Below the pieces are notes generated by a model. It worked only from the letters and a program-made list of their open reading frames with translations. It did not search any database and had not been told where the DNA came from. Positions 1,579 through 64,000 of a stretch of DNA of 64,000 nucleotides are shown here, piece by piece; the stretch's first letter is position 1; each line of letters starts with the position of its first letter. Origin of the DNA: Oculina patagonica (taxonomy: Eukaryota). Location: the NCBI RefSeq assembly GCF_052425735.1, contig NC_135761.1, positions 44,144,001 to 44,208,000 of the forward strand, given 5' to 3'. Made by a program: the position numbers and the translations under genes.

Positions 1579-10547
<8,969 letters not shown>

Positions 10548-14108: not shown

Positions 14109-17100
14109 TTAATGCTTTTCATTTTGGCTCTGGCTTCTCACCATTTCAGCAAACATTCCACCTTTTCTTATCAACACCTCAGGTTTATCAAACTCCGCCA
14201 CACGTCCGCCATCAAAAACCAGCACCTTATCATAATCCATGATGGTGTTCAGTCGATGAGCAATGGTCAGCACTGTGGAATCTGTAAATTTATAACGAAC
14301 GACTTCCTGGATCAAACGATCTGTTTGGAAATCCACATTAGCAGTGGCCTCATCCATGATGATGATCTTGCTCTTCTGGACCAGAGCACGAGCCAAACAC
14401 ACCAACTGTCTCTCGCCAACGCTCAAATTTGTTCCAGACTCTCTCAGTTTGAATTCGAGCTGTCCTGGCAGATCTTCTACAAGGGTCTTCAACTGCACCT
14501 CCTCCAGAGCTGTCCAGAGATCTTGATCGTTATATTTCGAAAAGGGGTCCATATTCCTTTTCAAGGTACCTCCAAATAGCACCGGATCCTGAGTTATAAC
14601 GGCCATGGACCTGCGGGCTTCTTGGAGATTGATGGATGCGATATCAAGACCATCTATCAACACCTAAAAGGAAAGACATATGGTTTAAAGTTTCTGTAAA
14701 TTATTGAGAAAGCTTGGTCTTCGGGGTAGTCTCTCGTTAGTTCTAAGTCAATTTCACCCGTCTCATTTTACTCCTCTCGTCCAGGTCAATTTTGTTAGGG
14801 GGTGGGGGTGGGCGCTTATTCGAGGCTGGGCGCTTATTAACTTTTCCTACCTACAGGGTGGGCGCTTATTCGAGGTGGGCGCTTATTCGAGGTTGGGCGC
14901 TTAATCGAATAAATACGGTATTCCAAGTAATTATATTTGGAAAGATTTAAAGGTGGAAAAATATAGTCAACACCTTAATGATTCTGGCCCAGTATTTGCT
15001 ATGCAGTTTATTCGTTCGTTCGTTCGTTCGTTCGTTCGCTCGTTCGTTTCTTTGATTGCTTATTTCTCTCTTCCGTTTTTACCGAGCCGTAACTTAAAAC
15101 TGACGTCATAAATCATAACGGGAACGACAAATTCCAATGAGTCATTTTGAGGTAGGCAAGATATTCATGTACGAAAACGTGACGACGTAAGCGGTTATAA
15201 CATAATGGCTTCTAATGTAGGCTACTTGTACGTTCCTCTGAAGATATTTTACAATAAATACCAAAACACTTTTACGGTAGCTTCAATCCAATGCAACAAC
15301 GTTTTACTCACCTTTCCTGAGGGATCTGGCATACGAAACAGCGCAGATACCAGAGATGACTTGCCTGCGCCAGTGCGACCCACAATTCCAACCTTCTCTT
15401 TACTCGAAACACAAACGTTGATGTCCTTCAAGATGCGAGGTCCACCGTCAAAGTAAACCAAAGAAAGATCCTGTATGGTTAAGTTTCCTTCAGTAGGCCA
15501 GGACTCTGGAGGACAGGTTTCAGTGCTGTAGCCGGGTTCTGAATCTATTCCAGTATACGTCATTACACGTTCTACTGACGTCATCAAGTTTTCTACCTCT
15601 GTCGCCATTCGTACACCATACTGCGTTTGGTCCAGCGTTTGTAGTGCGTACGTCAGAGCGAGGCCGGCTAAAACTAAAGAGAAGTATGTAATTACGGCTC
15701 CTATTTTCAGGCCAAAGTGGTCATATACGGTAGGCCTTCGGTAGAAGGATTTTTTATGTTTTAGTTATCATCCTGAAGTTTCTTAAATTGATAAATTGAC
15801 TTTATCGGAAAAATCTGGAATCTTTCAAAAAAGAATGAGCCAAAAGAAGAGGTAAGTCACTTAGGCCAGAACGAAACAATCTAATTTTAACCCGCACTAA
15901 TAAACTTAAACGCATGCTTCCAGCCGACACTGGGCAAGATACAACTAATCAACCGGATATAAACAACCCATCATCCGTCGATAATGGAGATCGTATTGCT
16001 AATAACATCACCACCGAACAAAATGCTACTACGGCTACTCCTGATCTTCCTAACAGAAACACTACCAACACCGCCCCTGGAACGTCTACATCCATCAGAC
16101 GAAATAAGAAAAATCGCAGAACCCACTCCCAAAACAACACATCTCAACCATTGGTAGAAACAGAAACAGTTATCAACCTTTCGTCTGCACAGCTTTCCAA
16201 TTCTGAGACCAAGTTATTATCACGAGGACTGTCCTTCGTCCCCATCCCCAAACGAATCAATTGGTCAGAATTACAGGCTGACATAAACGAGTTTGCTAGA
16301 AGATTACGACTTAGCGAATTTTTTCAACAAAAAGATCTCACAGATTCAACTAATCCACCTGATGATGAACCACAGACACGTTTCAGGTGTAAAGGCTCAT
16401 GGACTCCTCCTAACGGAAGAGACGCAGCCCTAGATACTTTCATAAATGCAATCGAAGCTAGCATCATGACTTCTAAACCAACCGCCGTCAACAACAATCT
16501 TTCTAAAAAGGAACGCAAGGCTTTAACAGATCTCAGAAAACGCTCAGACATCGTCATCAAACCAGCCGATAAGGGCTCTGGAACTGTTGTAATGGACCAC
16601 GCCTGGTATGTCAATGAATGTAACAGACAGCTTAATGATATCAAGTATTACGAGAAACAATCTTCGAATCTTACGAAAAAAATACAAGGCCTCGTCGTAG
16701 AATACACTACCCGTTTACACAATGACAACCTTATTGACTCTGAGACATTGAAATACCTTTCGTCCAACTCTGACCCCAAAGCAGGCCGCTTCTACATACT
16801 ACCCAAAATTCACAAGCAAGGCAACCCTGGCCGACCCATCATTTCTAGCAATGGCCACCCTACAGAACGGATTTCGGAGTTTGTCGACTACCATCTCAAG
16901 CCTCTTGTACAAGCCCTTCCTTCCCACATCAAAGATACTACACACTTTCTTCTACAACTACAGAACCTTGGCCCTTTACCGGACAACGCCCTCCTCGTCA
17001 CACTAGATGTTTCTTCATTATATACTAATATTCCGCACAATGAAGGTATCAACGCTTGTCGCCATTTTCTTGACACTCGCCAAAACAAATCACTTCCTAC

Positions 17101-20100
17101 TGAACGTATCTGTGATCTGATTAGAATGATTCTCAATATGAACAATTTTTCTTTTAACAATCAACATTATTTACAAATACACGGAACAGCCATGGGAACC
17201 CGCATGGCACCTTCATACGCGAACTTATTCATGGGTAAATTGGAACAAAACGCCATTGATAACACCGTAAACAAACCGCTCGTATGGTGGAGGTTTATTG
17301 ATGACGTTTTCATGATATGGACACACGGAGAAGAACTCCTCAAGAACTTCATAAGTTACTTAAACTCCATTCACCCGAGCATCAAATTCACCCATGAATA
17401 TTCGATTTCCTCACATCAGGCACTCCCTTTCCTGGATGTTCAAGTCCACCTTAGCAACAACCACATTCAAACAGATCTACATACCAAGCCCACCGACAAA
17501 CATCAATACCTTCTCAGAACCTCATGCCACCCAAACCACACGAAGGAAGCCATACCGTTCAGCCTGTTCCTCCGTATTCGCCGCATTTGCTCTACCGATG
17601 CTTTCTTTGACAAACGTAGTGGAGAACTCATCAAACACCTGATCAAACGTGGATACAGCCGCACTTCCCTACAGAGAGATGCAAATCGCGTTCGCGCCAT
17701 CCCACGTCACGCAACGCTCCAGCCCCAAGGACAGCAAACCACAAAGACAGACCGTACACCTTTTGTCATATCATTCAATCCTGCCCTACCCAAAATATCT
17801 TCTGTTATCAAGAAACACTTAAATATTCTCCAGTCCTCCGCCAACTGCAAAGAAGCTTTTCCTCATCCACCAGTTATCGCCTACAGACGTAACGCAAGTC
17901 TGCGTGATCTCCTTGTACATTCCGAGCTTACACATAAGAAGTTCTCCAAACAACAAGGCGCTGGAGTTCATAAATGCAACCACCCACGATGTCTCACTTG
18001 TTCATTTCTTCAAGAAGGCCAAACTAACTACACTTTCTTCAACACCAACGAGACACGCAAAATAACTGACAACATTTCTTGCCGCTCTAAAAACCTTATC
18101 TATCTAATCGATTGCAAAAAATGCCACCATCAATACATTGGGGAGACCAAACGTCAACTTAACGAACGCTTCGGACAACACCGCAGATCCATTCTCAACC
18201 ACCATAAACTTGATGACCCTACACCAGTATCTATTCATTTCAACCAACCCGGCCATTCCATAAACGACGTTCACCTCATCCCGCTTGAACTTATACGCAG
18301 CAAACGAGACTCAGTCAGGAAGGCTCGTGAAGCCCATTTAATTAACAAGGCAAAAACTTTACATCCTCTGGGAATTAACAGACGTGACGAAACACGTCAT
18401 TGACACTTGTTAGAACCAATCATTGTTTAGTATTTTATTTTAAATTTTTCTATTTGTAACGATCCTTTTATTTTTCTCATCATTTTGTTTCTCCGCCCAG
18501 CCCCTGTGGAAGATTTGTTTTGCAAACCGAAATATAGGGCAAAGTTTTTTCTACATATTCTAGTTTTTTTCTTTTTATCCACTTTGTTTATTTTTGACCG
18601 CTTTAGCCGTCAGGATCAGTTTGCCGTCTATATTTTCCGTTTTAACTTAGTTACTGATCCAGGTCTTCAATAGATCCGGCACCACTCATCGGTTTGTCGC
18701 TGTGATATTGCAGTATTTTATTATATAAGTCACTTAGGCAGGGTCGACTGCAAATGAAGCTGTTAAGCCATTTAATGTTTTAGCAATATGAACATATAAC
18801 TTATCTTAGTATGATAAATTGTTATTAGCGTAATTTTTTTTTTTAAATTTTATTCATTAGTAAATTTATTTGTAAATTTTTAGCTTTATCTAGGATAACA
18901 GCTTTTACATGGGAATTCAGTTTCCCCCTGCTGTTATCCTCCCACTTTTTTTTTATTATTATTATATATTTTATCTTTTTTGTTGTAAATATTTTTTGTA
19001 ATGTTGGGAAATCTAATAAAAAAAAAAATAAAAAAAATAAAAATGCTGAAGACCAAGAAGGGTTACAGTGGGAACAGGGGGGGGGGGGGGGGGTGATCAG
19101 ATGAAGAAACACGCTTTACCGGTTTGGTTTGCCTAAACACAGACTGTTTAAAGGTTGCTTGCATTGGTTAGAGAAAATGAAATTCTGCTATTTTAAGCTG
19201 ACTACTTCCTTCCTCCCCGTTCCACCCTAAAATACATTCATAGTTGATATACCAACTGCTTATAGTCGGGGAGCTGAGGCCGCAAACGAGTTACGACTAA
19301 GGGCCTGTTTACAAGCAGGTAGGGTAACCCTAGGTGCTAGGGTTACCCTAGCAAGAGGGTGAGAAGATAGCCCGGGTTTACAAGCAAAATTGGCAGGTAG
19401 GGTAACCCTACTTACCCGGGTCAACTTACACCGGTTACGCTTCAGTTAACCTTGTAAAATTTTGTCGTTAGAAACTGTTATTCGAAAATAATTCCGTTCC
19501 AGTGCAAAAATACGACAAATTGTGAATGAAAACGATGTTTCTTGGTCACAATTCGCTGTTCTTGTCGGTATTTTTAAACATATTTAGCCTTTTGGAGCCA
19601 AAATAAAGTTGTCTCGGGTAGGCGAGTAATCCCTAGCAGAGCGTTTACAAGGCGCTAGGGTTACCCTAGCAGCTAGGGTAACCCTAGCACTCAGCTAGGG
19701 TTACCCTAGCTGCTAGGGTAACCCTAGCGCCTTGTAAACACGTCGATGAAAAAAAGAAGAAATGTGGGAGCGCTAGGGTAACCCTAGGTGCTAGGGTAAC
19801 CCTATGTGCTAGGGTTACCCGCCTGCTTGTAAACAGGCCCTAAGCAACACAATGAACAGGATTTGTGAGCATTGTCGCCTGCATCGTTTGTTTACCCCAG
19901 CGTCAGAGACCACTTAGCTTGATAATTCTTACCAGGATTCTCCTTTATCAAAATGGCAGCCACTGCGACAATCGTAACGAACACGCTACAAAGAAGATCC
20001 ATACGAATCCCCAGCCAGCGATTACACGACACAACCATAAAGAAAGCTTGTGTGTTCTCGTCCTGGTACCTAAAAAGGAGTACTGTCATGAACATGACTT

Positions 20101-23100
20101 CGAAATGTCAAAAGCCAAAAGACATTTTCACTTCCATTTGAACCAAAAATGGCTTATTTGTTAAAACTTCTATGCTACTGCTATGAAGCTGTTATAGGGA
20201 CATTATCATAATCAAGAGAAACGCATGCAAAAGGTTTGATTTCAAATGGACGAAGTCGGACCACTTTCCAAATTCTGCTATTTTGTATTAAAACCCTATC
20301 AGTTAATTTCAATTTGATCTTCCTTTTCCTTCAGCAATATACTTAATATATTCATCCTGGTGCTCTAAGTGCATTTCGTTTATGAGAGTAGGTACATGAA
20401 TCATATACAGCATTTTTTCTCGCCACAAATGCAATAAAATTGCATTGACTGAAAACAACTGCTTAAGTTAAAGGACAGTGTCACGGCTGATATATCGTAT
20501 TTCTATAATTATGGCCTGTAGTTTGCTGTAAACTGGGTTTATTATCTCGTAATAGAAAGAAGAAAACGGTTCGTACAAAAAGTGGTAAAATGAAAAAGAT
20601 AACTAAAAAGAAACGACATGAATTAAAAAGATTCGAAATTTCACCAGAATGGCAATTTGGTTTCTTGTGATCCTGTCGCACAACTAAATTTGATGAACTA
20701 CAAACCACCTCCAAACTTATAATCCTACACTTCGTCCCCAAAATCCTTGCTTTCTTTTGCTCTGTAGAATCTTTTTATCCAATTGACTTGAATGTTTTGT
20801 GACATTTGGCAATAAAATATAGAAATGAGGAAAGAGAACGTTTGATAATCAGCCGAGACACCCTTGCAATGATTCAACTGTATTAATTGTGGGTAGTTGG
20901 GAGCTTCTTCATTCTCTAACCTATTTCATCTCCTACTAACCTTTGAAGCCTATCAAGAAACGTCCTGCTCATATCTGAAATATGGACTATTTCAAGTCCA
21001 TTTGCTGTTTCCGTGATGTGTGAGTACACAGGGCTGCATTTGATGGCCTCGATTCTCTTCAGCTCTCTGGAAGACTTCAGGTAATAACGAGCATAGTACA
21101 CCAATATCCCAATAATTGGAAGAAGAGCCAAGAAAAGCCAGTAGTTTGTTGCAGCAGGAACCAACATAGTACAGAGCTGGAACAGACACATTACAAGTGC
21201 CTGTAGAAACAGCGGTGGTAACACGTCGTCCATACAGCCAACATCTTTGGAGAACCGATTTAGAATACGCCCGGCTGGGTTTGTGTCAAAAAACAACACA
21301 GGGGCTTTGATCGTAGACACAGTCATTTTGTTGTGAAGGTTTTCTGCCGCTTTAAGAAGGAGGTAGTAAAAGAAGAAACAAGATACTGCCATGACAACAA
21401 TGGACACCGCCACAAGACAGGCGTGAATGACTTGGGTGTCCGAAGCTTTTTGCTGGTCATGTGACATCTCTGCCATTCTGGACAGCCACCAATTTGGAGC
21501 TATGAGGCAAACTAGAAAAAAATGTTCATATTGTTAGTCGGTTCCTCATCTAATCTAAATCAGAATGTGATAGGCATGTGTTGCATTTTCTATTTTAAAG
21601 GTTAATCTGAACAATAGTTTTACCGAAAGAGATTTAAAAAGGAAATATATTATCCCGATACCGAGTTTTTTTTTGGATAGTAGCATTGTAGCAAGACTGA
21701 CGACGTAAAATGAGATAGCATTTTTGGTAATATTCTAATATACAGCTAGTAATAAGTTCTTATACATCTCAAAACGACATACCTTTTCCTTACTTAACCC
21801 ATCAGCCAAATTGCATTTCGTGCCTTTCTACTAAAAACGCAGTGTTGTCATTTGATTATGATATGCATATGGTTTGACTGTCCAGATTTTCGCAAAAACG
21901 GTACTGCTTAACAACAGTACTGCTCGCCATTATTTAATGTGTTACCTTGCGCCAGTATTAAGAGAACTGCCAGGAGCATTATCAAGGGAGTAGGTAATCC
22001 TTCCTGAAAATATTTCCAGTAAAGTCGCCAGGTCACAGTGCCCTCCGTTTTACTCTCCTCCTCTTCCTTCAAATCAAGAGCTGGTGGATGATCAGACTCA
22101 GGCACTTCAAACGAGCTTACCCGGGACAGAGAGCGAGCAATACGCGAAACACTTCCATCATCCACAAATCCAACGCTTACAGGGAACATAACATCATCTT
22201 CCAACAGTTTATGTCGTTCCATGTCATGTCTCTTCTCGTGGAAAACCGAGGTAGCTGATCGCGGCTTGCGCATGATGGTCCCTCTCTCACCGAACTCGTA
22301 GAGACTTACACTTCTTGTGCGTGTAGGCTCATCTTCAAAGAGATCCGATATTTTTAAAATATCGGAAAATACTCCCTGATCTGTGAGCTCAGTATATCCT
22401 CCCTGGTGAATGATTGAACCGTTTTCCATCACTGCAATCCGATCCACATCTTTCAAATACTGTAGCTGGTGTGTGACCAACAAACGAATACGACCTGATA
22501 AATGGCCCACTAAACAGGCATCAAATATATTTCTTCCTACTTTGGTATCGACTGCACTCAGTGGATCATCTAGAAGGTAAATATCAGCATCTGAATACAC
22601 TGCACGAGCTAAACCCACACGTGCTTTTTGACCTCCACTGAGGGTCACTCCACGCTGCCCAATTTCAGTTAGGTCACCATTGGTGAAAATGGCAAAGTCT
22701 TTGGTCAAACCACATATGTCTACAACATGCTGGAATCTCTCCTCGTCAAATCGCAAGCCAAACAAAATATTCTCCCTGACAGTCCCCGAAAATACCCAGG
22801 GTATTTGCGGAACATAGGCCACTTTGCCATGATATGATATTCTCCCTTGAAGTAGAGGTAATTCACCAAGAATAGCTGTTAGTAGTGAGGATTTTCCACT
22901 CCCCACCGGACCAGTTATTGCCAACATCTTACCATCACATACATTGAAAGCTACGTTACTTATCGTCAACATATCGACGGAAGAATCTTGAATCCAAGAA
23001 CATGACGCCTCCGAAATTGAGAGAAACGGCTCTATGATGCTTGAGCTCTTTGTTTCATGACTGGCAATCAATTCGGTCGTCCCGTGATCCACATTCTCGG

Positions 23101-26100
23101 CCCTTCTGGGCATTGAGCTACAGGCAAATTTTTGAGAACTTTGATCTGCAGAATTGCTTTGTTCGCTGCAATTTATCAACCTCGTGGCCTCTTCTCGTTC
23201 CATAGAACCTTCAAATTTTAATGCAAGATCATCGTCAATACTTAACGGCTTTGTTGAAAGCAGACCTTCTGTTTGGTTCTTTTTGGCTCTTCCAACCTCC
23301 GATTCCTTGTCGTTAAGAAAGACTTGTATTCTATCGAGTGCTACTTTAGCATCTGCGACAATGTACACGGAGAGACTCAAGCTGTTACAAAATGTAAACC
23401 TGATCGTCACTAAGCCGAGAAGAAGCGTGAATATTGTGAAAGACGATAAGTGAGTTCCTGTCAAAGCCAGTGTTGCTACTGAAATAAGGGCGGCAATAGG
23501 AAGCATAGTGTAGTAAAGAACGGTAAGCAGGGAAACGATGAGACCTTTTAACCGAATTTTTGCCATCTCCTTCCTGCAAAAAAAGTACAGATAACAAAAC
23601 GTTGGCTGCGGTTTGTAGCTAAAAGGTCGTGTTTTATTGGAATAACAAGTTTTAGGTTGATTGAGTATTTTCGTGTCAGTTTGACAGATCAACTTCTTAA
23701 TTCAGCATCAAACTGGGTTCAAATGGTTGATTTGATTCAAACACCCAAATAAAACACTTATTCAAATATTTTCAGTTTAAACATTGACTAACGTACGTAA
23801 AAAACGGACCCAATCTAACAAAATGAAAATTGTTTATCTCAATGGAACACGACGGAACGGTTATCACCCATTTCAAATGAAAGCGGTTGGAAAAGTGCTC
23901 TGCTGGGACACTTCGTCTAAATCAACCAAAACCGTTTGCCATTGGAAAACGGTTGCCCTATTTAACCTGACCTTACTACAGTAAAAACCCGCGTGTAAGA
24001 ACCTAATTTTTTCAGAGTTTGGCAAAACAGGTTCTTGTATTATGGGGTACTTATTGACAGTTTAGGCTAAGTAGGTTCTTAATTAGGTTCTTAATTTCTA
24101 CAGAGTAGACATTGTTGTTGATTATCAGAAAATAGTATAAAATCTGGTCTGTTCTTCATTATAAATATTTATTAATGTACCCATGTTGCCAAAAGTCCAA
24201 CAACATTAATTGATCAATGATACATTACTGTAACATTGGTTTTTGGTAAAAAAAAAAAAAAAAATTAAATAGTTAAACACCACATATAAGAACCTGTTGG
24301 AATTTGTTTGGCTAAACAGGTTCTTATATTTTGGGGTATTAGAAAAGCAAATTTCTGCTAGGAGGTTCTTAAATCACTAGGTTCTTACACGCGGGTTTTT
24401 ACTGTATTTTATGTTAAACTAAAAAATCTAACGACTCTGTTGAATTAAAGATTGACACAGTGAAAAACGCAACGAGCCTTCAAGCAATAATGAACTTGGC
24501 AGTCGCTTCCTTGCATTCTTTGACTTTTTGTCATGTTTGGAGAGTAATAGCTATCGGGAGAGCTTTTTCTTTCATCGAATATTATTCATTGAAATACGAC
24601 GTGAAACACATATTTGTTGCCAATTATCGGCTTTCTTTCCAAGGCAGTATACAGAAAAGTTGGAAAAAATGCTGATGACCAATTCCCTTAAGAACGTTGC
24701 CCTAGCTAACTACATAAGCAGGAACACTAATTTTTTCATTGGTACCTGCGAAGGTCGTAAACAACATCTCTGAAATTCCACTCCCAAGCATACATCTTTA
24801 CCGCTCGTATTCCGGAGATGATTTCATTCATCACCACAAGCCGTTCATCCGTGAATGCGGCCGCTTTCTCTCTAAGCTTAGCAGCTTTTCTTGCCATTAA
24901 CATTTGAAAGGCGACTAATACGAAAAAAATGGCAGCACCAACCAGAGCCTCCCAGCCAATCAAGTACCACAGGATCACCAAGCTGATTGTGAGCTCCAGT
25001 GGCGCGGCTAACACCATACCTAGTTGGTTCAAGGACCGCTCGATTTTCTGTGCGTCATTCGAGACCAGGTTAATGGTATTTCCAGACAAGGTGGCTTCCA
25101 GGCTGAAACGATTTAGCGAGAGAACCTGAATGCAGAAAAGAATACAGCTGAACTTTTCTACAAATGGTTAGAGAAGCGGCCGTTGTTGTTAAGTAGGATG
25201 GGAACTCATCTAAGACACCCGGGACCGGTTGTTCAAAGTGCAATAAAACGTATCCAGGATTACCGTGAATATAATTCAGTTTTGTAACTTGTCAATGTGG
25301 CTTTCTGTTTATTTTGTGTCCTTCAGATTATTTGTCGACCACAAGGGTTAAACCACTAAACATTTACAGTGAAAAACACTTTTGTACAAGAGAAATTAAA
25401 ACCTCCAACACGTTGAATCCTGAATTAACGTTCATTAAATTTTGAACTTGGTTCAGGAGCATTGCTTCTCCCGCTGGAGAGCACGCTAGCGCAGCGCAGG
25501 TTAAACCCCTCCCTCGACACCCAACTTCTCTTACCCCAAACGCTTTTCCTGTTGCCCTTATAGTTCCCGATTTACCCATTTATCCTTCTGAGTAGGGAAA
25601 GGCATTATAGGAGAAAATTGTGTTCCCAAGACCCCAGCTGGCGCCCCCCCCCCGGGGGGGGGGGGGGTACTCGACATAGTTTTGGGTAGGGAGGTGCGCC
25701 CCGGACTCCTAAACCCTGGCCCTGTTTAAGACACAAACCTCTGATTTTCCTACCCTGTTAAAGACAGAATGCCAATTTTTAATACCCCGTCTAAGACATC
25801 GACAAGCACCTCACTGGCTTTGTTGTGATCGTGAATTAAGCCAAGTATCAATGCGGAAATCAACGTAAGTCAGCAATACGGAAGAATTTGTGAAAATTCG
25901 GCTTGTTACACCTCTGCAGGCATTTGTAAGCCTATTCTGTTTGACATTGGTCCATGCAAAGATACCCCTTTTAGAACAAAAAGGGGTGAAATATATACCC
26001 CGTTCAAGACAAAAAGGCCTGATAACCATACCCTATTGAGGGACTGGCGCTCAAGCCCGGACCATTTTCACTGACAAGTTCGTTTCTCAGTGTGGTTCTC

Positions 26101-60798: not shown

Positions 60799-62748
60799 GC
60801 TAAGAACCAAAACAAAAACCTGATGTAGGTAGGACGCACGGGCAGTTTTGATTCATTCTCAAACATGCCTACTCTGAGAAACGGACTAAGACAACCCTGA
60901 CGATTCTTTCGAACTAGACATTTCGTTTTAATCTTTATTTCAACACGGTAAAATCATCAGGACTTAAAATACACAATACTTATTTAAAATTACTTTATAC
61001 CTATTTTAAATAATAAATTCAAATTGCATTAGTCGTCTACAATGATATTAAGAAAGGAGGCGATAATAAATCATAATAAAAGAAATGCCTGCTTTCCATG
61101 AATGCCGTGTGATGTTAATATTTTCATTGATTCTAGCCAAAAACGAAACTGCTGCAGCCGGATTTAAAGCTAGTGAGAGTTTGTGCTTGCCGAAGGTCGA
61201 CAGGTAAACTGTTCCACAGCACCGCATCTCTATAGCTAAAACTTTTTTTAAGAAAATTAGTGCGGGGGAGCGGAACAGTAAGTTTACCCGCGGACTCTCT
61301 CAGTGAATAGCTACACGTATCGATTCTATTAGAAAACATTGTCCTCAGGTAGTCAGGTGCAAGACCATTGATTGATTTATAGACCATGACGGCTGTTTTA
61401 AATTTAAATTGGACATCGACTTTATTCCAGCCAAGTCTTGCAATAAGATCATCAGCATTGACACTAGACAAAACTGCTCAAAAACTAAGGACCTGCGAGT
61501 GTGGGCTAAACTTTGATCACCCTTGGACTTGAAGCCTAAGAGTTACCTTGAACAACCTTGGTAACTATAACATTTAACAGCATTCCTCTCCACTTAGTTT
61601 GAGCATCGCCCCCGATGTACATCGAAAATTAGGTGTAAATAAGGCAATAGAAAAACAGAAAAATAGCAAAATTGATAGACATTTTCAATAGTCAAAACAA
61701 AGTAATAAAAAAAGATGAAAAGCTCACAAAGGTAAAATAAACAATTTTGTCTAGCGTCCCAGCGTGTTTAGGAAAGGTTAAATACATTCTTAAGTGATAA
61801 TTTTGATTGATATAAACAATATAAAATAAAATACTTTCCAAAACTGAATATAACGAGATACGCAACCGATATATAGTTTCACTAACAACATAACTACAAT
61901 TTTTTTAGGTATTGTTTTTTTTTTTTTTTTGTTTTTTTTTTCAAGGATTATAAAAATGATGCATATATACGATAAAGAAGTTATAATGGTACACTAAGGA
62001 ATAAAAAAACACATATAAAATTAAATGAACACATCAAAATCATTCATTCCCGGCGTCGAGTTCTAAATTACAAAAATTTAAAAGGGATTAGTAGTGGATC
62101 GCAGGGATTGGTAGTCTGGTGGCTTCATAAATGGAGACTATGTCACGCGTCAAGCCCATATATTCCGTAGACTTGATGGTAAATAAAATATCGCTTAAAG
62201 AATTCTCTCTAAAATCATTAATATAATCGACTGGAAAACGAAGAATTTCCCTGAGGAACCACTCATTGACTCGGGTTCTCCACCAAATATGTTGGATTAC
62301 TATAAGGGGATATTCGGCTCTCTTGTGTAGGAAGGTACCAAGACTCTGGCTGTTTCAGTACTCGTCAAGGATCTTGAATGCACTTCGTCTGCAGCTACTA
62401 AATAACTAACTATAGCGAACTAGTATCCATTCTGATATAGGTATACTGTAGACATGTTTGGGTTTGCTGAGCGTGCAAACTGTTATTGCACATCCCACAG
62501 CATGATTAAACTCGTGAGAACACTCTTGTTAGATGATCAACTAAAGTAGAGAATAACCAATTAAATTTTAATGGTAAACTTCAGAGTTAGACTAAGAACC
62601 CAAACAAGAACATGATGTAGGTGGGACACACGGGCAGATTTGATTACCAAACATGCCTACTCTGAGAAACGTAAAAGGGTGGTATGTTTTTTGAACTAAG
62701 ACAGCCTAAAAACGAACTAAACACTAGACAAAACTGCTCAATACTAAA
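60799..62748. repeat. Dispersed ~150-bp direct repeat (60799-60920 plus 61461-61490, and 62592-62748); the first copy is interrupted by the LINE
   Basis: CTAAGAACC..TGATGTAGGT..CAAACATGCCTACTCTGAGAAACG..CACTAGACAAAACTGCTCAA is present in both. Confidence 0.75.
60925..61462 (-). mobile_element. 3' fragment of a CR1/L2-clade LINE
   Basis: ORF end GLAPDYL...YSLR...PLPRTNFLKKSFSYRDAVLWNSLP is typical of the CR1/L2 ORF2 C-terminus; 3' UTR ends AATAAAGATTAAAA. Confidence 0.85.
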
Positions 62749-63101
62749 CACCTTCAGTTTGCTGGTGTTTTCAACCAGTACAAAACAAATTCACTTGCTT
62801 TCGTCCTTGTTGTGTTCTCTGAAAGTGATGTCGTTACAGTTAGGTAGGTTCTTTTTGATAGCCCCCCCCCCCCCCCCCCTTCAGCCCAAAGAAAAGTAGA
62901 AATATGAGGAATATCTAAAGTGGCTCATGTCTAACGAACAAGTAACCTGTCTGAGCGTAGCTAAACATTTTTCTTTTTGTTGTTATTAGAACGAACATGA
63001 AACAATGAATTTACTTGTGTTATATTGTCGTTCGTATCATTTCTAAATAAAAAAAAGACGCTCTTTGAAAAAAAACACACACGAGGGTCTTAAAAAGTAG
63101 T

Positions 63102-64000
63102 TCATGTCGTAGCAACATGTATCAGTCTTTCCACCTGACCAGCTAAGTCGCCATTGGTATTCACCAACCATCCATACATTGGCATTGGATCCTGATCCAC
63201 TTCACAGATAATATCGCGTTGAAGGACACCTCTTGTGATAAGGTCTGCAACTGCCCGTTCTGCGGCTGTTGTGACTACGCTCATGTCCTGTGGGAATGCT
63301 ATCTGTCCTATAGTAAACGGTCCCATGTAATAGATGGGAGCAAAAGGACCTTGAGCTGCTGGCACCAGGGAGAAATTGTTAATATTAATGAGTGCACCAG
63401 TTGGACGGAAGTAATTGACCCCATCCCTTGTCACCACGTTTGGATGGTCTTCGTGGTTTTGGGACTCCTTGGCATTCCGGAAAGGAACCAAAATCTCTTT
63501 GATAAGCTTCGCTTTTATTAGGGATGTCGTCAGAGGGGAGTAATCTTTCTCAAACGCGGCCTTCTGACCAGTAGCATCAATCATGACATCATGATGGGCC
63601 TCAAAGGTGTAATCTCCGCTTGGTCTCCATGACAGTTTGATGCCACTTCTATCTTTTTCCTCTTCAATTTCATAATTTTTTCCAATCTTTGTAACTTCGA
63701 GATAACGCCCTCTCATAAGAGCCAAGATCTTTTCAGCATTTTGAACTGGGAAGGGCCCAATAAGAAGGTGCAGCTCAGTCTTGATTTCCTCAAACCTGAT
63801 GCGATCTTCTGCTGAGAAGTAGCTGAAAGCTTCGTCGAACGCTACATAAGACTGATAAAATACATTCTGAAGAAGTAGAGGTACACCGGTTTTCAGGCTC
63901 TCTTTCGCCTCGTCAAGCTCTTGGCTTAATCTTTCGACGGGGTCAGTTGTTTGCAGCAACTTTCTCATTTTAAGTACCGCTTCTTCCAGTGGCACCGTTT
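63102..64000 (-). CDS. C-terminal part of a putative FAD/NAD(P)-binding oxidoreductase resembling bacterial YdhS/NAD_binding_9 proteins
   Basis: About 299 uninterrupted codons, open to the window edge; motifs FPVQNAEKILALM, DVMIDATGQ and IYYMGPFTIG. Family assignment is from memory only. Confidence 0.65.
   Translation of the reverse strand, partial: TVPLEEAVLKMRKLLQTTDPVERLSQELDEAKESLKTGVPLLLQNVFYQSYVAFDEAFSYFSAEDRIRFEEIKTELHLLIGPFPVQNAEKILALMRGRYLEVTKIGKNYEIEEEKDRSGIKLSWRPSGDYTFEAHHDVMIDATGQKAAFEKDYSPLTTSLIKAKLIKEILVPFRNAKESQNHEDHPNVVTRDGVNYFRPTGALININNFSLVPAAQGPFAPIYYMGPFTIGQIAFPQDMSVVTTAAERAVADLITRGVLQRDIICEVDQDPMPMYGWLVNTNGDLAGQVERLIHVATT

Follow-up and report, generated by a model that had tools for sequence, protein, structure and literature searches.

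The window analysed here is a stretch of 64,000 nucleotides from the coral Oculina patagonica (C4:44144001-44208000 in a 64.4-Mb host scaffold), the far end of which cuts through a flavoprotein gene on the minus strand. With good confidence, this gene is best explained as a functional animal gene of bacterial origin that belongs to the YdhS/CreE-like superfamily; the bacterial origin and the retained function, taken for themselves, are held with even greater confidence. An anthozoan ancestor would have acquired a bacterial PF13454 gene of this superfamily, which would then have been fixed on a chromosome, have taken the base composition of the host and been kept as a single coding exon. The transfer appears to be ancient, since the gene is common to stony corals and an octocoral. 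Two lines of evidence for horizontal transfer were found, namely a strongly supported nesting in the phylogeny and linkage to host DNA combined with presence in several species. Bacterial gene transfers into cnidarians are known by the dozen and the event itself is unsurprising; the value of the gene is its chemistry, which is still unexplored.

Gene anatomy, relatives and probable bacterial ancestry

On the minus strand of window positions 63102-63998, 298 sense codons and a stop codon are read without a single internal stop. The reading frame crosses the end of the window and runs through 1,012 further bases of the scaffold stretch that continues past it (L002). The complete open reading frame (ORF) counts 636 codons from ATG to stop (C4:44207102-44209012, minus strand, equivalent to L002:1102-3012, with the ATG at C4:44209012 or L002:3012); residues 339-636 are encoded in the window and the other 338 codons beyond its end. 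An ORF of 636 codons is far beyond chance in DNA of 38% GC. Its coding part is a single uninterrupted exon without intron, the gene is present in one copy in the 529-Mb genome, and the N-terminus of the protein (M..YDIAIVGAGAYGT) is common to the orthologues in the alignment. An earlier note, made from the letters of the window, had described about 299 open codons without an intron, which turned out to be the last 298 codons and the stop of this intact intronless ORF, and all the motifs that it quoted (NAEKILAL, DVMIDATGQ and IYYMGPFTIGQ) are present.

A word-indexed search of 5.8 billion proteins returned 47 matches, about 30 of which are coral-like with 48-85% identity. Orthologues were found in Montipora foliosa, on a 71-Mb contig, and in the stony coral Desmophyllum pertusum, and further coral-like orthologues lie on contigs of up to 5.7 Mb. 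The Montipora protein carries the automatic NCBI name 'YdhS-like', which means that the similarity had already been caught by annotation pipelines. Exact look-ups of the protein from the window and of this Montipora protein returned no record. Two paralogues were observed in the octocoral Dendronephthya gigantea (P0019 and P0021, 59% and 56% identity, longest contigs 416 kb and 462 kb). All inspectable orthologues are intronless; single exons were seen in Dendronephthya (L004, beside a retrotransposon), on the Tara coral-metagenome scaffolds L010 and L011 and on two large ENA contigs. Below the coral-like group, identity falls sharply to 38% and then to less than 30%, in proteins labelled as bacterial (metagenome-assembled genomes, Drouetiella, Alloyangia). 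An exhaustive HMMER search, run against 1.84 billion representatives, agreed with this. The sole intermediates were P0049 (41% identity), P0031 (38%), P0050 (35%) and P0051/P0192 (35%), and no bacterial protein in this library was more than 41% identical to the coral protein. Above that value both libraries hold only the coral-like group, in which three rows are named by organism.

Two trees were built, a quick one with 91 rows and a careful one with 54 rows (IQ-TREE, LG+C20, ultrafast bootstrap/Shimodaira-Hasegawa-like approximate likelihood ratio test). In the careful tree the coral-like rows form one clade with a support of 100/99, in agreement with the quick tree, and this clade joins the bacterial proteins P0049, P0031, P0050 and P0192 at 100/99. 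The pair of corals and bacterial sisters is itself nested among other bacterial YdhS-like proteins, with Escherichia coli YdhS far away. Within the animal clade, octocoral rows are sister to stony-coral-type rows, matching the species tree, and row P0030 from a 5.7-Mb contig branches deeper. The earlier note had proposed a bacterial enzyme domesticated by an animal, to be checked by phylogeny. This proposal is supported by the nesting of the animal clade among bacterial proteins (100/99), by chromosome-scale linkage and by purifying selection; neither broadly distributed metazoan homologues nor signs of a contaminant, the two contrary outcomes that it named, were seen.

Corals and bacterial sisters are further united by derived residues (M280, Y386, Y389, F392, D393 and A572-x-P-Q-D576), M280 standing where 41 of 47 other family members have Arg. 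Two further features, an additional segment within the helical domain and the C-terminal motif N-x-K-G-x-L..M, are present in both and absent from the other family members. The clade-specific residues Y386, Y389, F392 and D393 were identified from alignment column counts and are encoded in the helical-domain segment of the window. A572-F-P-Q-D576 follows downstream of IYYMGPFTIGQ and is a signature otherwise seen only in the bacterial sister proteins, and the tail motif N-x-K/N-G-D-L..M is common to the sisters P0049, P0031 and P0050. The nearest ESM Atlas clusters are 98-100% bacterial.

The contig that encodes P0050 (L007) is bacterial and gene-dense, with genes for CcmC, TsaE, a peptidoglycan amidase, AmgK, MurU and ParA, and on the contig of P0049 (L006), likewise bacterial, a MocR-type regulator adjoins the flavoprotein gene. 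At L007:9295-20431, the P0050 gene was observed among an O-methyltransferase-like gene, a gene for a 668-residue glutamine-synthetase-like protein and four genes resembling gamma-glutamyl-gamma-aminobutyrate hydrolase (Peptidase_C26), a neighbourhood that recalls gamma-glutamyl carrier chemistry for amines or hydrazines. On another bacterial contig (L008:2313-12308), P0192 with its 801 residues is found in a gene row resembling a biosynthetic cluster, together with a PNPOx-type flavoprotein, a cytochrome P450, a carrier protein, an adenylation enzyme and acyl-CoA dehydrogenases.

Fold, cofactor motifs and predicted chemistry

A search of the full ORF, as advised by the earlier note, matched Pfam PF13454 (NAD_binding_9, FAD-NAD(P)-binding) over residues 11-188 (59.8 bits, cut-off 21.8, E 3.9e-16); the match spans model positions 1-154 of 155 and passes the gathering threshold. 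A Pfam scan of the window fragment alone gave no family match; the PF13454 domain falls outside the window, so that the family had originally been recognised from a C-terminal half that Pfam does not cover. A 67-sequence family alignment served to build an AlphaFold2 model, which reached a predicted local distance difference test score (pLDDT) of 89.2 and a predicted template modelling score of 0.90, with only about the final 33 residues poorly defined (pLDDT <50 for residues 604-625 and 630-636). The protein begins directly with a Rossmann strand and lacks an obvious targeting motif at its C-terminus, which suggests a cytosolic enzyme.

A Foldseek comparison of the model with the PDB gave the aspartate N-hydroxylase FzmM (8cp2/8cp5) as the top full-length match (E 3e-22, template modelling score (TM) 0.67-0.71), followed by SidA, PvdA, KtzI, NbtG, other N-hydroxylating monooxygenases and flavin-containing monooxygenases (FMOs) with E values of 1e-10 to 1e-13. 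In the Swiss-Prot part of the AlphaFold DB, the top match was E. coli YdhS (E 1e-34, TM 0.84 normalised by hit). Next came CreE and a Streptomyces davaonensis enzyme, which are nitrosuccinate-forming aspartate N-monooxygenases, then fungal NpaA and Rv3403c and, further down, ornithine and lysine N-monooxygenases. By sequence, the family profile matches 8cp2 with E 2.6e-14; a phmmer search of PDB sequences with the coral protein returned nothing at E up to 1, and FzmM was reached only by profile and fold searches.

The cofactor motifs point in the same direction as the fold. The first dinucleotide motif, for flavin adenine dinucleotide (FAD), is G14-A-G-A-Y-G19, and the second, in the domain for reduced nicotinamide adenine dinucleotide (phosphate) (NAD(P)H), is G224-C-S-L-S-A229. 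Both are conserved in the 67-sequence alignment, as are LATGH at residues 184-188, R272 and DATGQ at residues 479-483. In flavoproteins that have two dinucleotide-binding domains, DATGQ corresponds to the second 'ATG'-type motif, and its G482 and Q483 are almost invariant across the family. N67 is conserved in all but one of the 67 sequences and aligns with the catalytic Asn62 of FzmM in a profile alignment. The family alignment shows no conserved pair of redox-active cysteines. Of the features by which class B flavoprotein monooxygenases are recognised, those of sequence and structure were found, namely GxGxxG, a second dinucleotide motif, ATG-type motifs, the catalytic Asn and the similarity of the fold. 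It is hence predicted that the coral protein, a member of the YdhS/CreE-like superfamily, is a class B-type flavin monooxygenase and would use FAD, NADPH and O2. The chemistry, which the earlier note had called unknown, is in this way narrowed by prediction to the type of a class B flavin N-monooxygenase.

In the FzmM structure, the FAD and NADPH domains have a helical substrate domain wedged between them, the catalytic Asn62 sits over the flavin and an arginine cluster binds aspartate (PMC10404684). From this structure and from class B flavoprotein monooxygenases in general, a mechanism can be proposed for the coral enzyme. FAD would be bound in the Rossmann domain and NAD(P)H in the second dinucleotide domain, with the helical substrate domain wedged between them as in FzmM. 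NADPH would reduce FAD, and O2 would react with the reduced flavin to a C4a-(hydro)peroxyflavin that is stabilised under the conserved Asn67. An oxygen atom could then be transferred to a small amine bound in the helical domain, with the amine nitrogen as nucleophile.

The substrate pocket appears to differ from that of FzmM, in which the aspartate entry chamber is made up of R13, R266, R276, R409, R412, R416, R577 and N413 (PMC10404684). In a profile alignment at about 15% identity, in which R276 and R577 have no mapped partner, R13, R266, R409, R412 and R416 align with coral Y18, M280, Y389, F392 and F/L396, and N413 with D393; the aligned helix of the coral protein has no arginine cluster. 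An identity as L-aspartate N-hydroxylase was rejected on these grounds, and aspartate seems a very unlikely substrate. Since the arginine cluster is replaced by aromatic residues, Met and Asp, a neutral or cationic substrate is probable, as opposed to a dicarboxylic amino acid.

Whether the enzyme oxygenates nitrogen is a closer call, in which we lean slightly towards N-monooxygenase chemistry. Its main competitor accepts the transfer and holds that the protein is another flavoprotein with two Rossmann domains, be it a urate-hydroxylase-like C-hydroxylase of the HpyO type, an S-oxygenase, a Baeyer-Villiger enzyme or an NAD(P)H quinone or disulfide oxidoreductase. None of the close relatives has a known substrate, related clusters carry the automatic name 'HpyO/CreE-like', and FMOs and cyclohexanone monooxygenase are found among the structural and profile matches. 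However, the best full-length structural matches of known function are all N-oxygenating (FzmM, CreE and NpaA, then SidA, PvdA, KtzI and putrescine N-hydroxylase), the coral protein has a helical substrate domain like that of FzmM and a conserved pair of redox-active cysteines is missing from the family alignment, all of which makes this competitor unlikely.

If N-oxygenation is accepted, it is conceivable, as a tentative idea, that anthozoans convert a neutral or cationic amine into an N-oxygenated small molecule with an enzyme derived from bacteria. Products that might be considered with equal reserve are an N-hydroxy compound, a nitrone, an oxime, a nitro compound or a released precursor of nitrite or NO. 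To our knowledge, no animal genome is known to encode a dedicated biosynthetic N-oxygenation of such type. The pocket signature M280, Y386, Y389, F392, D393 and Q575-D576 would then define a new substrate class in the YdhS-like superfamily and might provide the first functional handle on YdhS-like proteins generally.

Selection, expression and alternative origins

Vertical inheritance would require that an ancient eukaryotic gene was kept only in Anthozoa and lost elsewhere. Fungi do have members of the wider superfamily, for example NpaA, and other eukaryotes could hide among the rows without a taxon name. However, the sister group of the anthozoan clade consists of proteins from clearly bacterial contigs (35-41% identity), with which it has derived residues and the C-terminal motif in common, no intermediate eukaryote-type sequence is present among the 1.84 billion representatives, and the coding part is intronless in every species examined. 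A vertical origin is thus very improbable.

Compared with two stony-coral orthologues, the gene has a ratio of nonsynonymous to synonymous substitutions (dN/dS) of 0.11-0.21 at a synonymous divergence (dS) of 0.4-1.4, which indicates long-standing purifying selection. Expression was approached by comparing four runs with L002:301-5300; no run recorded as RNA contains the gene stretch. In two small runs from two other organisms, guessed to be RNA, short low-depth contigs with about 96% identity cover L002:874-3034, that is, the 3' flank and most of the coding part, and the coverage of the 3' flank is continuous with that of the coding part. The unique intergenic bins 635-801, 3140-3473 and 3808-4141 of L002 are empty in both runs. 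This pattern fits transcripts better than low-coverage DNA and hints at transcription, though it is not a proof. The contigs of both runs, which are independent of each other, end at an 18-base poly-C run (window 62863-62880), 220 bases downstream of the stop. No AATAAA occurs within 500 nucleotides of the stop; one ATTAAA is found 529 nucleotides after it. The 3.8-kb Logan contigs of P0011 were rejected as transcripts; they are colinear with genomic scaffolds and uninformative on splicing.

At the 5' end, the match of a contig of run X2 stops at L002:3034, at a polypyrimidine-AG 20 nucleotides upstream of the ATG, and 176 further letters are unmatched. The polypyrimidine tract ending in AG extends over L002:3033-3075 (C4:44209033-44209075, minus strand), and a similar acceptor-like motif is located 2-45 nucleotides upstream of the ATG in three other species. 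It could mark an intron of the 5' untranslated region (UTR) that was gained after the transfer, a hypothesis to which we attach little weight; against it, the related contig L009 continues across this position as genomic DNA would.

Two polyA runs without reads on the gene, the missing canonical AATAAA near the stop and a Montipora model flagged 'LOW QUALITY PROTEIN' could be taken to mean that the gene is a decaying relic, transferred but no longer expressed or functional in this species. The ORF, however, is intact over 636 codons, every family-invariant residue is retained, the low dN/dS holds at appreciable dS, and contigs from the two runs that are probably RNA lie on the coding part but leave the adjoining unique intergenic DNA uncovered. 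Decay is therefore very improbable as well.

The gene is also embedded in host DNA. The earlier note had pointed to animal-type repeats nearby, and dispersed host repeats were found on both sides. The downstream one is a retroelement fragment, of which many chromosomes carry copies (at least 40, with 74-97% identity). The upstream one, a repeat of about 400 bases (C4:44210414-44210809, L002:4414-4809), lies outside the window at 1.4-1.8 kb from the ATG. It gave more than 3,000 first-look candidates, of which the 40 scored are about 80% identical; copies are present on all large scaffolds, and it reaches a read depth in the thousands in runs of related corals. Six ORFs for rhodopsin-type G-protein-coupled receptors (GPCRs) of 224-276 codons are found on both strands at window 31094-56844 (7tm_1, E 1e-22 to 1e-28). 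The GC content of the gene and that at its third codon positions (GC3) are both 0.46, compared with a GC3 of 0.40-0.45 in host neighbour genes (0.42-0.45 in the GPCR genes) and a GC content of 0.38 in the window. Contamination, a chimeric join and pseudogene decay are all unlikely because of the scaffold position, the flanking repeats, the GPCR neighbours, the GC3, the single-exon orthologues and the dN/dS. An ORF from a coral-associated bacterium, brought in by contamination or a chimeric assembly join, would account for the lack of introns and for an overwhelmingly bacterial family, but the chance of this is negligible and the contaminant reading was rejected, as the ORF lies 44 Mb into a 64-Mb scaffold with interspersed repeats of many host chromosomes within 2 kb on both sides, has the GC and GC3 of host genes, has orthologues beside retrotransposons in independent large eukaryote-type contigs of several species and is at most 41% identical to bacterial proteins.

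Several points weigh against a functional, transferred gene with the chemistry proposed above. Two polyA raw-read runs of another species (X15 and X16, about 3.4 million reads each) gave 0 reads on the gene; their reads fell only on upstream repeats, and the outcome is neither support nor evidence of silence. Coverage of the gene is limited to low-depth contigs, and the runs behind them are guessed to be RNA. Most 'anthozoan' rows were assigned from identity, contig size and sparse gene calls, and the absence from other animal phyla is deduced from missing matches in libraries that are mostly without taxon names. The residue mapping to FzmM was made at about 15% identity, at which single positions may be shifted, and neither any subfamily member nor E. 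coli YdhS has a known activity. Scans of 185,579 reference genomes (GTDB) with an alignment of corals plus sisters and with one of the sisters alone revealed no donor lineage. A metagenome scan yielded one short sister fragment (L017, 49% identical to P0050, without context) and 34 distant YdhS-like loci. Since the GTDB scans gave no member of the sister clade and the metagenome scan a single fragment, the donor lineage is rare or unsampled.

Window features and comparison with known systems

The features of the gene that fall into the window, its 3' flank and the downstream retroelement are listed in Table 1.

Table 1. Positions of the flavoprotein gene, its motifs and adjoining elements in the 64,000-nucleotide window
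Feature	Window position	Strand	Evidence
Last 298 codons (residues 339-636) and stop (63102-63104)	63102..64000	-	Translation, single copy
Helical substrate domain, second half (residues 339-435; helices 342-434)	63708..63998	-	AlphaFold secondary structure, comparison with FzmM
NAEKILAL motif	63717-63740	-	Translation
DATGQ motif (residues 479-483), within DVMIDATGQ	63564-63578	-	Alignments
IYYMGPFTIGQ (residues 560-570), C-terminal glycine motif of the flavin domain	63303-63335	-	Alignment
C-terminal tail (residues 601-636), ends in a helix, low model confidence	63105..63212	-	pLDDT, alignment
3' flank, candidate 3' UTR, ends at poly-C/G run	62874..63101	-	Short contigs of two putative RNA runs
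Dispersed host retroelement fragment, 1.6-2.0 kb downstream of the gene	61100..61463		Genome copy search

The downstream retroelement appears to be young, as 18 scored copies, about 364 bases in length, have 94-97% identity. A 112-codon ORF overlaps with it, which resembles the C-terminal end of ORF2 of a long interspersed nuclear element and has no match in Pfam. The GPCR ORFs form a tandem cluster, the closest member of which is 6 kb from the flavoprotein gene. Two other long ORFs are present in the window. The first (15914-18403, plus strand, 829 codons) combines a reverse-transcriptase domain (RVT_1) with a following GIY-YIG nuclease domain, the architecture of a Penelope-like retroelement, and is apparently intact. 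The second (21908-23692, minus strand, 594 codons, TTG as first possible start) encodes the ATP-binding domain of an ATP-binding cassette transporter; it is unusually long for a single animal exon and could be a large exon or another intronless gene.

Literature searches with YdhS, PF13454 and coral gene transfer combined with flavin monooxygenase turned up no mention of this gene in any cnidarian. It adds an enzyme class to the list of anthozoan transfers, that of FzmM/SidA-like flavin N-monooxygenases as predicted here, and its retention by stony corals and an octocoral, as one intact exon under purifying selection, points to a conserved piece of anthozoan small-molecule metabolism. As a presumably soluble animal protein whose model is confident and whose pocket is distinctive, its product offers a tractable entry into the chemistry of a large uncharacterised family. 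For annotators, it follows that the gene should not be filtered from coral assemblies as contamination.

The best-known name in the family is that of E. coli YdhS (P77148; NCBIfam NF007381/PRK09897), which the coral protein resembles in superfamily (PF13454) and overall fold. In a BLASTP alignment with YdhS from NC_000913 the identity is 25% over 500 residues, and both proteins have GxGxxG, N67, ATGH, GxSxSA, LP and DAxGQ. The coral protein, however, is about 100 residues longer, has the extra helical-domain segment and the C-terminal tail otherwise found only in the bacterial sisters, and scores 99 bits in the NF007381 equivalog model against a cut-off of 783. Orthology with YdhS was rejected on account of this score, the low identity and the position of E. 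coli YdhS in a separate, distant clade. The earlier note, which saw the C-terminal half of a YdhS-like flavoprotein, was thus right about the superfamily, to which the top AlphaFold DB match also belongs, and the likeness does not extend to orthology. The name gives no chemistry either, because the function of YdhS itself is not known.

With the L-aspartate N-monooxygenases FzmM (PDB 8cp2), CreE and NpaA, the coral protein has in common the three-domain plan with a large helical domain between the FAD and NADPH domains. It differs from them in its sequence (only about 15% identity), in the residues that take the place of the aspartate-binding arginines and in the setting of its gene, which no partner lyase or decarboxylase gene adjoins. 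With the N-hydroxylating class B flavoprotein monooxygenases of the SidA/PvdA/IucD type (PF13434), both dinucleotide-binding domains superpose (E about 1e-12, TM about 0.45 by query and 0.6 by hit), and the same NADPH/FAD/O2 mechanism would be expected. These enzymes belong to another Pfam family; the helical substrate domain of the coral protein is much larger and does not superpose, and its gene has no siderophore-pathway context.

Among anthozoan gene transfers, the closest parallel is the set of 41 candidate bacterial-to-anthozoan transfers reported in eLife (Bhattacharya et al., 2016; PMC4878875). The table of that study names no flavoprotein, oxidoreductase or YdhS-like entry; 3 entries are merely 'predicted' or 'hypothetical' and were not matched to the gene. 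The kind of event is the same, namely a bacterial metabolic gene that several anthozoans have in common, that groups within non-metazoan sequences and that is linked to genes of the host.

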